A program made the position numbers and the translations under genes. DNA of 63,364 bases, the filler included, from Guillardia theta CCMP2712 (lineage: Eukaryota; Protista; Cryptophyta): the NCBI RefSeq assembly GCF_000315625.1. It is 6 parts of 6 records of this genome, joined end to end, with 100 filler letters (N's around TTAATTAATTAA, not from the genome) between each part and the next. Parts side by side here need not be neighbours in the genome. Positions count along the whole stretch, not along the records: positions 38,631 to 50,888 come from NW_005434398.1; 5 more parts are not named here. One strand, written 5' to 3'. The notes under the pieces were generated by a model. It was not told where the DNA came from. It saw only the letters and a program-made list of their open reading frames with translations, and ran no database searches. Below, one piece after another: positions 38,760 through 50,858 of this stretch. Positions within the stretch are counted from its first letter, which is position 1, and every line of letters starts with the position of its first letter.

Positions 38760-40092
38760 TGGCCGGGGGCCTGATCTCTCCGGGCGGCCGTGACCGGTCA
38801 GCGGACCGTGTCAGCAGGCCCGTGACATGTCAGCCGGCTGACAGGGGCCGTGACCCGGCTGACAGGCTCACCTGACCGGTCACGTGACACATCACGTGAC
38901 CGAGACAAGACTTTTTTATATCGCAGATCCAAAAACCCATAGGACATTTCTCCCAGGGGGAAGAAAACCTCCCTTGACCCCCCTGTTTCTCGACGGATCC
39001 TGCCGGCCGGGCCCGTCAGTAGACCGACTGCAGCCTTCAGCCCCGCCTCAGACCCCCTGGAGGCCCGCCAGGAGGCTAAGTGTCCGGAGATTGGCCGGGG
39101 GCCTGATCTCTCCGGGCGGCCGTGACCGGTCAGCGGACCGTGTCAGCAGGCCCGTGACATGTCAGCCGGCTGACAGGGGCCGTGACCCGGCTGACAGGCT
39201 CACTGACCGGTCACGTGACACATCACGTGACCGAGACAAGACTTTTTTATATCGCAGATCCAAAAACCCATAGGACATTTCTCCCAGGGGGAAGAAAACC
39301 TCCCTTGACCCCCCTGTTTCTCGACGGATCCTGCCGGCCGGGCCCGTCAGTAGACCGACTGCAGCCTTCAGCCCCGCCTCAGACCCCCTGGAGGCCCGCC
39401 AGGAGGCTAAGTGTCCGGAGATTGGCCGGGGGCCTGATCTCTCCGGGCGGCCGTGACCGGTCAGCGGACCGTGTCAGCAGGCCCGTGACATGTCAGCCGG
39501 CTGACAGGGGCCGTGACCCGGCTGACAGGCTCACCTGACCGGTCACGTGACACATCACGTGACCGAGACAAGACTTTTTTATATCGCAGATCCAAAAACC
39601 CATAGGACATTTCTCCCAGGGGGAAGAAAACCTCCCTTGACCCCCCTGTTTCTCGACGGATCCTGCCGGCCGGGCCCGTCAGTAGACCGACTGCAGCCTT
39701 CAGCCCCGCCTCAGACCCCCTGGAGGCCCGCCAGGAGGCGGAGTGTCCGGAGATTGGCCGGGGGCCTGATCTCTCCGGGCGGCCGTGACCGGTCAGCGGA
39801 CCGTGTCAGCAGGCCCGTGACATGTCAGCCGGCTGACAGGGGCCGTGACCCGGCTGACAGGCTCACCTGACCGGTCACGTGACACATCACGTGACCGAGA
39901 CAAGACTTTTTTATATCGCAGATCCAAAAACCCATAGGACATTTCTCCCAGGGGGAAGAAAACCTCCCTTGACCCCCCTGTTTCTCGACGGATCCTGCCG
40001 GCCGGGCCCGTCAGTAGACCGACTGCAGCCTTCAGCCCCGCCTCAGACCCCCTGGAGGCCCGCCAGGAGGCGGAGTGTCCGGAGATTGGCCG
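38760..40092. repeat. Tandem array of a 332-bp unit, left block (4 near-identical copies)
   Basis: GGCCG recurs at 38761, 39093, 39424, 39756 and 40088 (spacing 332/331/332/332). The unit is rich in TGAC/GTCA palindromes and CACGTG boxes. Confidence 0.97.
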
Positions 40093-40119
40093 CATTCCAT
40101 TGGGTTCTCAACTGGATTT
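40093..40119 (+). repeat. Left terminal inverted repeat CATTCCATTGGGTTCTCAACTGGATTT
   Basis: Reverse complement of 50232-50258 (26/27). Confidence 0.95.
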
Positions 40120-41164
40120 TATTCCGTCTCGGCGGGGTCTTTTTCTACCTGGATTTTTCTTAATGAATAGGTTTTGGATTTCAAAGTGAAAATTTTCCTT
40201 GAAATGTTTTACTTCTGTCAAACCACGCCATTTCAAATTGTGGGATCCTGCCAGCACCGTGCCATTTCTGGAATTTTTAAACGTTGTACAGAATGTACCA
40301 ATGTTGTACACTGTGTTAGTTTGGGAGACTCACGTTCAAGCAGATCGCGCCCTGTGGGCACCATGTTGTGAGATACATACATCAATGTGATGACAAGAAC
40401 ATCTTTTGATGCCAAATTTGACCAGATTTGAATGTATCATGTGGGAAAACGACTGCATTTCCTTTAAGCAGAGTGTTTTGAGGATGATGCATATCATGTT
40501 GCAATAAGAATTTTGTGGAAAGGAAATATTTGAATCTCAGTTCGTTGAGTTGCGTGTAAATGCAAATATGCTTTGAAGCATTGTGAGCATAGTTGTAACT
40601 GTGCATTGACTTGTAATAGTGTAAGGTATGCATTCAAATTTGCATGCTCACGCTATCCAATAATTGTGTGACTTTCCTTGTCATACTTGCACTGAAACAC
40701 CTCAATTCTGATGTGCCAAAGCCCTGATCAGCTGTTTTCACACTTTCAGAAGGGAAACATGAAAGGAATCGATCAGAGAGGCAACCTTCGAAGACATAAA
40801 GGAAATGCGATTCTCCTTATTGCGATGACGGCCTAGCTTCCTGTACCAGAATGCTTCGTCGGTTGTATATGAAACATATTTCAAGAGACTTGCTGGTGCT
40901 TTGCCATGATTGCATTTTTTGAGGCTTCTCCCAATGCATTCCACAACAGTTTGAGTCTTGTGAAATGCTCTCAACAGCCAGTGGGATGGCGATTATAACA
41001 TGTCATTGGAGTTTGTGAGGCACTGAGAGGGAGGAGAGAGGAGGGGACAGGGGAGGTGGGAAGGAGATGGGAGAGTAGGGGTTGGAAGGGAAAGAGAAGC
41101 CTGGGAGGTCACTGCGATGATATGCTGATCGCGAGAGACTGGGAGATGCCAGAGGAGAGACGGT

Positions 41165-48330: not shown

Positions 48331-50231
48331 GATGAGGTTGTTGTAAGTGTGTTTCTGCTTGGCAATCAATAGCAACGCTTAGCAGATGTGATTGTTTACA
48401 CATCCTCATTGTCATTCCTGTTGTGATCAGTAGAGTTTCGATTATCTTTGGTGAAAATGCAAACCTTGTTGCCAACATGATTCATTCAGGATCCTCACAT
48501 CATTCTATTTGTTTGCATCTCCTTCTTTTGAAAAGTGTATCTCAGAGTGTTATTGTCTACTGTGACATCCTCCCGAAGTTTCTCCTGTCCTTTGCGTGCT
48601 TTATGTTCTGTGAACTGCTACTACCAGGACAGTGCTGCTTCAAAGCTGTTGTATACAAGGGACCACAGTAACCACCATCATGGTGAAGCATCTTTTATTT
48701 GTTGGCAAATAAACAATCTTCAGAAACTGTTGTTATGCAGATTCAAGTTTGCATGACTGATACAGCTTCTGCCTACTCTATATATCGCTTGATCCCTGGT
48801 ATCACAGCCTAGATGTCAAACATGCAATACTATCTCGGAGTGTGCAAGACATTTTCCTGAATTTGCATGGTTGGAGCAATTGCGAGAAAGGATTTGCAGA
48901 GAGAATAAGATGGCATTTGCACGGGTTGTCATGAAAGATGCTTCATCAACATCATTGGCAATGCCGCAGTAACACGATAATACGATTCACAGCCGTGATT
49001 TTCAGTGTGGAAAGCAATCTCATATCGACACGTCTGAAACAAGCATCTGATACAAACGATTATCTTCTTAAAACTCTGAATATCGCCAACCATATCATGT
49101 ACCTGCCATTGTCCAATCAGCACATCTAAAGTGTCCTTGATGCAACTCACTGGCCATATAGGGTTGTGCCACGAATGATACCGTAGGCCATGAGACAGAG
49201 AGAAACACAAGGTGGACACTATTTCGTATGATGTTTTTGCTTACAATCACAGTTTCGAAATACATGCTGAGATCGGCTGTTGCTATGCCATCTTCTGTCC
49301 ATTCTGAAATTACACTTGAACATTTTCAATCAATCGTCATTGTGCAAGAATTTGAATTATTTGCTCAACTTTGACATCATCTTCAGCCCAAGCTAAGTGA
49401 TCTAAGTGGTTTTAGTGCAATTTGAGGCAGCGTGGTAATGAAAGAGATGTTGCATTGGCTTTATGTTGAGGATGAGATGTTGAGTTCAAATCCCTTTCTA
49501 CTTCTTGAATTTCACAGAAGAGACCAAGTCATCACAAATAGACAGGTAACCGTATCTTCTTTTCCTGCATATCCATGCATGGTAGGATTCGAAGTCTCAC
49601 ATTGTTCATTATCGTCCTCACGCGCGTCAATGGGACAATCTCACCATCTCTTGTTCGTCGAGGGAGGGGGGGGCTGGAGTGGAGACAAATGGGGGGACCC
49701 CCTACCCATCATTTTCCCATTTGAAATTGAGAGACTGGGGGGTAGAGGGTGAACCTTGGTCAAATTCGAACCGTAAAACTCGCAACGCTCGAGAGTGTGA
49801 CCCACCCTACGCGACAACGAGGTTTGGAATGGAAATAATGGGGTCAAAGGCGTGGCGATTCAAACCCACATCAGCCACCCCACTCGAGTACAAGACTCTA
49901 GCTCAGGTGGGTGCTGTTTGACCACGCGTTCGAATCCTAACGGTAATCGAAGAGATTGCTTTTCAGCGTCAATTCCACTACCAGAATGCCCAAGACTTTT
50001 ATGATTCTCGCCCACTCCTGAAATCAGACTACCTACCCTGACATGATCTCTTGTAAAACATACCGGTGGTGTAGAGGTGATAGTCGAGGGAGCACTGCCA
50101 GCCCACGGGAATTGCTGACATTGACAGTACAAACTTAGTACGGAGGGGGAAAGGGGATCCTGATACAAAAATCCTTGAACCCGGTAAAACTCAATTATAC
50201 CTCGGTACAAACAGGCTAGCCTGGTACAAAC

Positions 50232-50258
50232 AAATCCAGTCGAGAACCCAATGGAATG
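50232..50258 (-). repeat. Right terminal inverted repeat AAATCCAGTCGAGAACCCAATGGAATG
   Basis: Reverse complement of 40093-40119. Confidence 0.95.
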
Positions 50259-50858
50259 GGGGCCTGATCTCTCCGGGCGGCCGTGACCGGTCAGCGGACC
50301 GTGTCAGCAGGCCCGTGACATGTCAGCCGGCTGACAGGGGCCGTGACCCGGCTGACAGGCTCACCTGACCGGTCACGTGACACATCACGTGACCGAGACA
50401 AGACTTTTTTATATCGCAGATCCAAAAACCCATAGGACATTTCTCCCAGGGGGAAGAAAACCTCCCTTGACCCCCCTGTTTCTCGACGGATCCTGCCGGC
50501 CGGGCCCGTCAGTAGACCGACTGCAGCCTTCAGCCCCGCCTCAGACCCCCTGGAGGCCCGCCAGGAGGCGGAGTGTCCGGAGATTGGCCGGGGGCCTGAT
50601 CTCTCCGGGCGGCCGTGACCGGTCAGCGGACCGTGTCAGCAGGCCCGTGACATGTCAGCCGGCTGACAGGGGCCGTGACCCGGCTGACAGGCTCACCTGA
50701 CCGGTCACGTGACACATCACGTGACCGAGACAAGACTTTTTTATATCGCAGATCCAAAAACCCATAGGACATTTCTCCCAGGGGGAAGAAAACCTCCCTT
50801 GACCCCCCTGTTTCTCGACGGATCCTGCCGGCCGGGCCCGTCAGTAGACCGACTGCAG
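50259..50858. repeat. Tandem array of the 332-bp unit, right block (1 full + ~0.8 copy)
   Basis: Same unit and orientation as the left block, resuming at GGGGCCTGATC. Confidence 0.97.

Follow-up and report, generated by a model that had tools for sequence, protein, structure and literature searches.

A transposon of Guillardia theta with a predicted RAG1/Transib-fold transposase, inserted into a 332-bp satellite without a target-site duplication of two or more base pairs

The window analysed here is a stretch of 63,364 nucleotides (filler included) from the cryptophyte Guillardia theta CCMP2712. Its piece at 38631-50888 carries a single copy of an inserted element (n=1), which interrupts an array of a 332-bp satellite. 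In this copy the target-site duplication amounts to 0 bp, or at most to an ambiguous 1 bp (G): both ends of the element are complete and abut neighbouring target bases, and no base was gained or lost. The element encodes a transposase, GUITHDRAFT_149260, whose predicted structure resembles RAG1 and the Transib transposases, a superfamily of which a target-site duplication of 5 bp is expected. The following sections describe the junctions, the transposase, the possible modes of integration and the further gene content of the element.

Junctions of the insertion within the satellite array

The satellite is present at 38760-40092 with 4.0 copies of the 332-bp unit and 99% matches (Tandem Repeats Finder (TRF), period 332; unit comparison). 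It breaks off at 40092/40093 with the last bases ...TTGGCCG and picks up again at 50259, in phase, for a further 1.8 units (50259-50857, identified by junction reading and unit comparison). The left junction reads ...GGAGATTGGCCG/CATTCCATTGGG (40092/40093) and the right junction ...CCCAATGGAATG/GGGGCCTGATC (50258/50259). At the uninterrupted unit junctions (39086, 39417, 39749 and 50579) the sequence is GGAGATTGGCCGGGGGCCTGATC with 5 G in four out of four cases. When 40093-50258 was deleted in silico, so that 40087-40092 was joined to 50259-50584, a 332-nt unit with 0 differences from units 3 and 4 was obtained. Both the intact junction with 5 G and its exact restoration upon removal of the element had been described in a first-pass annotation of this DNA and are reproduced here.

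The inserted element extends from 40093 to 50258 and was delimited by the in-phase interruption of the satellite, the drop in G+C content (0.61-0.64 in the satellite, 0.38-0.57 in the insert), its inverted repeats and the rebuilding of the unit on its removal. An inverted-repeat search yielded a left terminal repeat of 27 nt at 40093-40119 (plus strand), which starts with 5'-CATTCCATTGGG, and a right terminal repeat of 27 nt at 50232-50258 (minus strand), which is identical to the left one in 26/27 positions, with A/G at position 18. The element thus begins with CATTCCATTGGG... and finishes with ...CCCAATGGAATG, so that its termini are 5'-CA...TG-3'. Inverted repeats of 27 nt that differ at a single position delimit the interruption of the satellite, which also coincides with the drop in G+C; it is therefore confirmed as real and as no chance match. 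The matching inverted repeats, together with the satellite phase, which agrees across both sides, also speak for a single insertion. An origin of the array from the element was rejected, since a comparison of satellite unit and element revealed no common sequence.

The length of 10,166 bp is nominal because it includes an assembly gap of 100 N at 47234-47333. This gap touches neither junction; it is situated upstream of the transposase frame, in no supported coding frame, and a stop at 47208-47210 closes the transposase frame 23 nt before it. An "open reading frame" (ORF) of 107 amino acids spanning the gap was discarded as an artefact of N being read as X.

A duplication of n bp implies that the left flank ends in the same n bases with which the right flank starts. 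This applies for n=1 alone (G/G), whereas duplications of 2, 3, 4 and 5 bp are ruled out by the mismatches CG/GG, CCG/GGG, GCCG/GGGG and GGCCG/GGGGC; they are likewise excluded because the unit is restored exactly. As G is the final base of both the left flank and the element, a shift of the boundaries by one base is possible. The earlier statement that the insertion has no target-site duplication therefore stands for duplications of at least 2 bp and for the exact restoration of the unit, but it had overlooked the ambiguous 1-bp G. The 5-bp duplication expected of the Transib/RAG1 superfamily is absent from this copy, the one that was tested. Since both inverted repeats are full-length and agree in 26/27 positions, and only a canonical intron breaks the transposase frame, the insertion gives the impression of having happened recently and cleanly and not of having decayed.

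The insertion target GGCCG/GGGGCC is G+C-rich and lies inside a satellite of 61-64% G+C (n=1), in keeping with the preference of Transib and RAG for such targets (PMC1131882). That the satellite might be an array of small nuclear RNA (snRNA), 5S or transfer RNA (tRNA) genes serving as a specific target was considered and rejected, with no match in Rfam or by ARAGORN. The left edge of the array (within 38755-38775; …CCTTCAT/GGCCGGGGGCC) is 6 nt off the insertion phase GGCCG/GGGG, a coincidence of ~4% if edges were random; this near-coincidence may point to a fragile or transposase-targeted site, or may be chance. The array sums to 5.82 units, which is no whole number, so that one of its edges is truncated. 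Within the element, the motif TGGATTT recurs subterminally, three times on the left (40093-40190) and two times on the right (50160-50258), and represents a possible transposase-binding site. Beyond the 27 nt the two element ends diverge, with no obvious 12/23-type spacer asymmetry.

The transposase and its predicted fold

The transposase gene is located on the minus strand at 44514-47207, with the annotated ATG at 47132, and was assigned by a 100% word-search match, a tblastn map, the fold and the invariant residues. The minus-strand frames 45660-47207 and 44514-45653 constitute one gene, GUITHDRAFT_149260, encoding 816 amino acids. They are joined by a 57-nt GT-AG intron at 45611-45667, which was read directly and contains both in-frame stops; a second annotated intron is found near the 3' end. 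Matches of 27 family proteins in tblastn were confined to 47168-44514, and the stretch right of the gap gave no alignment with these proteins. At ~45080 (minus strand) the translation reads EESNGK and the corresponding database protein (P0001) EENNGK, with one residue differing.

At the sequence level the transposase is isolated. Neither GUITHDRAFT_149260 nor the relatives that were looked up belong to a Pfam family, in the case of the transposase itself even at E 10, and phmmer and family-profile searches against all PDB sequences returned no match, none to RAG1 or Transib. Similarity to the RAG1 core or to Transib transposases was consequently not detected at the level of these Pfam and profile searches, and the ESM Atlas offered no usable neighbour. 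A complete HMMER search of 1.84 billion representatives retrieved 19 relatives in all. Ten of them were looked up and comprise G. theta paralogues, transcripts of the sister species Hanusia phi and a few environmental contigs; all of these ten with a named source are cryptophytes. Among the paralogues, GUITHDRAFT_145307 is 57% identical to the transposase, and GUITHDRAFT_110480, _162260, _110778 and _122885 are 22-30% identical; a second copy with more than 57% identity was not present in the protein databases searched, so that there may be few autonomous copies of this subfamily. A 17-mer of the inverted repeat occurred in 55 metagenome contigs, none of which matched past the 17-mer, so that these are chance matches, and a 23-mer of the element end had no match in viral or prokaryotic genome contigs. 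In the literature no paper combining "Guillardia theta" and "Transib" was found; the papers on Guillardia mobile elements that were found deal with polinton-like viruses.

The structural comparison gave a different picture. An AlphaFold2 model of the transposase was built on a 20-sequence alignment and has a predicted local distance difference test (pLDDT) score of 80-95 across residues ~280-790. In a Foldseek search against the PDB, all 48 significant matches were RAG1, amphioxus RAGL (6b40) or Helicoverpa Transib (6pqx), with E values down to 8e-10. Alignment with VIA-align placed RAG1 at Z 17.6 (424 residues, root-mean-square deviation 4.8; model residues 242-816 on RAG1 480-1018), HzTransib at Z 17.1 (408 residues) and BbRAGL at Z 16.8. 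The next class was the P element transposase with Z 12.1, followed by ISCth4 (Z 8.3) and Hermes (Z 6.4). The model thus has the RAG1-core fold, consisting of an RNase-H DDE domain, an inserted zinc-binding module and a C-terminal helical domain.

The residues conserved among the relatives are in accordance with this assignment: D343 (12/12), D477 (11/11), C496 (10/10), C499 (11/11), H752 (13/13), H758 (13/13) and E783 (11/12). By order and spacing they follow the RAG1 arrangement D, D, CxxC, H, H, E of catalytic residues and zinc ligands. The distance from D477 to C496 is 19 residues and the same as that from D708 to C727 in RAG1. As counterparts in RAG1 we take D600, D708, C727, C730, H937, H942 and E962, an assignment made by order and spacing. 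From the modelled fold we conclude that GUITHDRAFT_149260 is a DDE transposase of the RAG1/Transib fold whose lineage has diverged beyond the reach of sequence methods. The Transib/RAG frame in which the first-pass annotation had placed the element gains support from this model.

Integration mechanism and rival explanations

We propose that the insert is a cut-and-paste DNA transposon of G. theta whose transposase belongs, as a highly diverged enzyme, to the RAG1/Transib structural class, with an RNase-H-type DDE core and an interleaved CxxC...H...H zinc module. The copy entered the sequence GGCCG/GGGGCC of the satellite with complete 5'-CA...TG-3' ends, and both 3'-OH ends of the excised element would have been joined to target phosphates that are directly opposed or 1 nt apart, in contrast to the RAG, RAGL and Transib enzymes, which work with a 5-nt stagger. 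The lack of a duplication would then be a property of the cryptophyte lineage, comparable to Spy, an offshoot within PIF/Harbinger that lacks duplications. We see an even chance that strand transfer took place at such phosphates and that the absence of a duplication is intrinsic to the lineage. This is favoured because the chemistry in question always yields an exact, loss-free junction, whereas a family duplicating 5 bp would need a rare accident. There may be room for an altered target geometry since the lineage is extremely divergent, the Pfam and profile searches being blank, and Spy shows that a DDE superfamily can include a subgroup without duplications (PMC4122938).

Several points weigh against this proposal. 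The evidence consists of one insertion, and its two junctions belong to separate contigs within a single scaffold, so that the halves are linked by scaffolding alone. For a DDE dimer, a stagger of 0 nt is unusual on steric grounds. The capture of an excised, blunt-ended element by a non-transpositional route would be rare and would look identical. Moreover, every characterised RAG, RAGL and Transib element duplicates 5 bp (PMC1131882, PMC9435367, bioRxiv 10.1101/2023.08.20.553239), which includes ProtoRAG, HzTransib, the hemichordate RAGL-A and the protist AanRAGL (PMC9435367; bioRxiv 10.1101/2023.08.20.553239). RAG in vitro produces mostly 5 bp and at times 3-4 bp (PMC1131882), and in the assays duplications of 3-7 bp are counted as bona fide (PMC9435367; bioRxiv 10.1101/2023.08.20.553239). 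Two premises of the earlier annotation, namely the 5-bp rule for Transib and RAG and the existence of duplication-less DDE elements such as Spy, agree with the cited work (PMC1131882; PMC9435367; bioRxiv 10.1101/2023.08.20.553239; PMC4122938).

The chief rival is this capture route, as a one-off within a family that normally duplicates its target: a blunt-excised element would have been end-joined into a clean double-strand break of the satellite, with the shared G perhaps as microhomology. The RAG/Transib fold implies that flank hairpinning leaves blunt 5'-CA...TG-3' ends on the excised element, which would fit the complete repeats at both junctions; the 1-nt overlap of G is compatible with microhomology, and the 5-bp duplication is universal among the known relatives (PMC1131882, PMC9435367). 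Nevertheless, four ends would have to join with zero nucleotides lost or added, where end-joining capture typically leaves small deletions or fillers, and the site bears no independent sign of a break. We regard such an event as possible, although rather unlikely. A true 1-bp duplication of G is arithmetically feasible, with G as the final base of the left flank and 5 G after ...GGAAT; either the element would end with ...GGAAT and the G would be duplicated target, or the target unit would have had 4 G. The former spoils the 5'-CA...TG-3' symmetry and the latter needs a variant that was seen in 0/4 intact junctions, and a duplication of 1 bp would still be non-canonical for the Transib/RAG superfamily, so that we consider this improbable.

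An assembly artefact or a later change of the locus appears very improbable. Two insertions could have been chimerised across the N gap, given that the junction-bearing contigs are separated by 47234-47333, but the exact appearance would arise only if the unit phases of the two differed by exactly 5 bp. The first-pass annotation had suggested that a duplication of whole 332-bp units would be hidden in the array or that unequal recombination had erased a short one. Identical flanking units do conceal duplications of unit length; however, these would demand nicks 332 bp apart, and no DDE transposase is known with a stagger of hundreds of base pairs. As for recombination, either copy of a short duplication is normal satellite sequence that runs on directly into the flank on its side. 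Gene conversion or unequal crossing-over would remove or copy the element together with its flanks and could not delete the short duplication on its own. Neither suggestion is upheld.

Strand transfer without a stagger of more than 1 nt, if it is indeed a trait of the enzyme, would have consequences beyond this locus. The 5-bp duplication counts as a hallmark that ties together Transib, RAGL and RAG-mediated transposition and is used as an annotation criterion. A RAG1-fold enzyme integrating without a stagger would mean that the target-capture geometry of the class is evolvable, would provide a natural contrast for structural studies of strand transfer, and would be the first example without a duplication in the class from which V(D)J recombination arose; searches demanding a 5-bp duplication would overlook part of the family. 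Tentatively, and at somewhat below even odds, we suggest that cryptophytes hold a third, deeply diverged lineage with the RAG1/Transib fold, which is invisible to sequence profiles and inserts itself with a stagger that is blunt (0 nt) or 1 nt long, without duplication. Independent of the duplication question, the RAG1/Transib-like lineage to which the transposase belongs is remote, with 19 detectable relatives, none from a named non-cryptophyte source, and no Pfam model, and it extends the protist range of the class past the pelagophyte AanRAGL.

Gene content of the element and comparison with known systems

Besides the transposase gene the element carries a gene encoding a CDC7-like protein kinase on the minus strand at 41411-43156 (Pfam Pkinase 1.2e-34, second exon 9e-5), which was assigned by these matches, its CDC7 relatives, TRF and the translation. 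The kinase domain is interrupted by one stop or intron at ~41669. A 69-bp repeat in 5.3 copies (42732-43101) codes for the basic N-terminus of the kinase, and the acidic tail derives from a TCATCC repeat (41442-41499). A 418-amino-acid protein from a 1.5-kb JGI contig, which may be a transcript, is 99% identical to the kinase; further relatives were found in Hanusia phi (70%) and in the G. theta paralogue GUITHDRAFT_116856, with 82% along a portion of the length. The kinase gene may have been captured from the host, or it may be a passenger conserved in this transposon family.

An orphan ORF, GUITHDRAFT_122309 (P0148), is located on the plus strand at 43684-44496, tail-to-tail with the transposase gene. 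A homologue search for it was empty and a single-sequence model was unusable (pLDDT 33.7). Its orientation resembles that of RAG2L, which lies tail-to-tail with RAG1L in RAGL elements. A search for a RAG2-like partner gave no Kelch or RAG2 match in Pfam among 55 + 8 ORFs of at least 60 amino acids. At 43601-43675 there is a perfect 36-bp tandem duplication, itself palindromic with 30-nt arms, placed where one in-frame stop separates the ORFs 43069-43680 and 43684-44496 of the plus strand. An Rfam match to mir-44 at 43601-43683 was well under the gathering score and was dismissed as an artefact of the palindrome or hairpin. The 2.9-kb stretch from the gap to the right end is without supported coding sequence and contains an ACAA-rich 25-bp tandem repeat at 47796-47939.

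Transib elements are defined partly by 5-bp duplications and G+C-rich targets (PMC1131882). With the Transib of Helicoverpa zea (6pqx/6pqn) the Guillardia element shares the predicted transposase fold (Z 17.1 over 408 residues), a lone transposase without a recognisable RAG2-like partner, inverted repeats beginning with 5'-CA and, at this one insertion, the preference for a G+C-rich target. It differs from Transib in that sequence similarity is not detectable and this copy lacks the 5-bp duplication. The element is also 10 kb rather than 3-4 kb in size and carries the CDC7-like kinase gene and the orphan ORF, and its transposase has an extra helical extension of 240 residues at the N-terminus. 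At ends resembling recombination signal sequences (RSS) a CAC-type heptamer is expected (PMC1131882, PMC9435367), whereas the ends of the Guillardia element read CATTCCA..., and the agreement is limited to the first two bases (CA).

RAG1 and RAGL proteins (mouse RAG1, BbRAGL 6b40, AanRAGL) include the best structural matches and have the same residue order (D, D, CxxC, H, H, E); with AanRAGL of a pelagophyte, the class already has one protist host (PMC9435367). A RAG2-like kelch gene of the kind adjacent in RAGL elements was not detected among the Guillardia ORFs of at least 60 amino acids, and no match exists at the sequence level; AanRAGL and ProtoRAG, furthermore, carry 5-bp duplications.

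In its mode of insertion the Guillardia element resembles Spy. To our knowledge, Spy is the sole eukaryotic cut-and-paste group without a duplication; it prefers insertion between AAA and TTT, and the Guillardia target is instead G+C-rich. The enzymes differ as well: Spy uses a PIF/Harbinger-type DDE transposase, a type not represented among the structural matches listed for the Guillardia protein, whose predicted fold is that of RAG1/Transib. Spy is a group within PIF/Harbinger-ISL2EU-Spy and is known from many copies, the Guillardia case from one (PMC4122938). Common to both are eukaryotic cut-and-paste transposition, as proposed here for the Guillardia element, inverted repeats, insertion without a duplication and empty sites that are restored exactly (PMC4122938).

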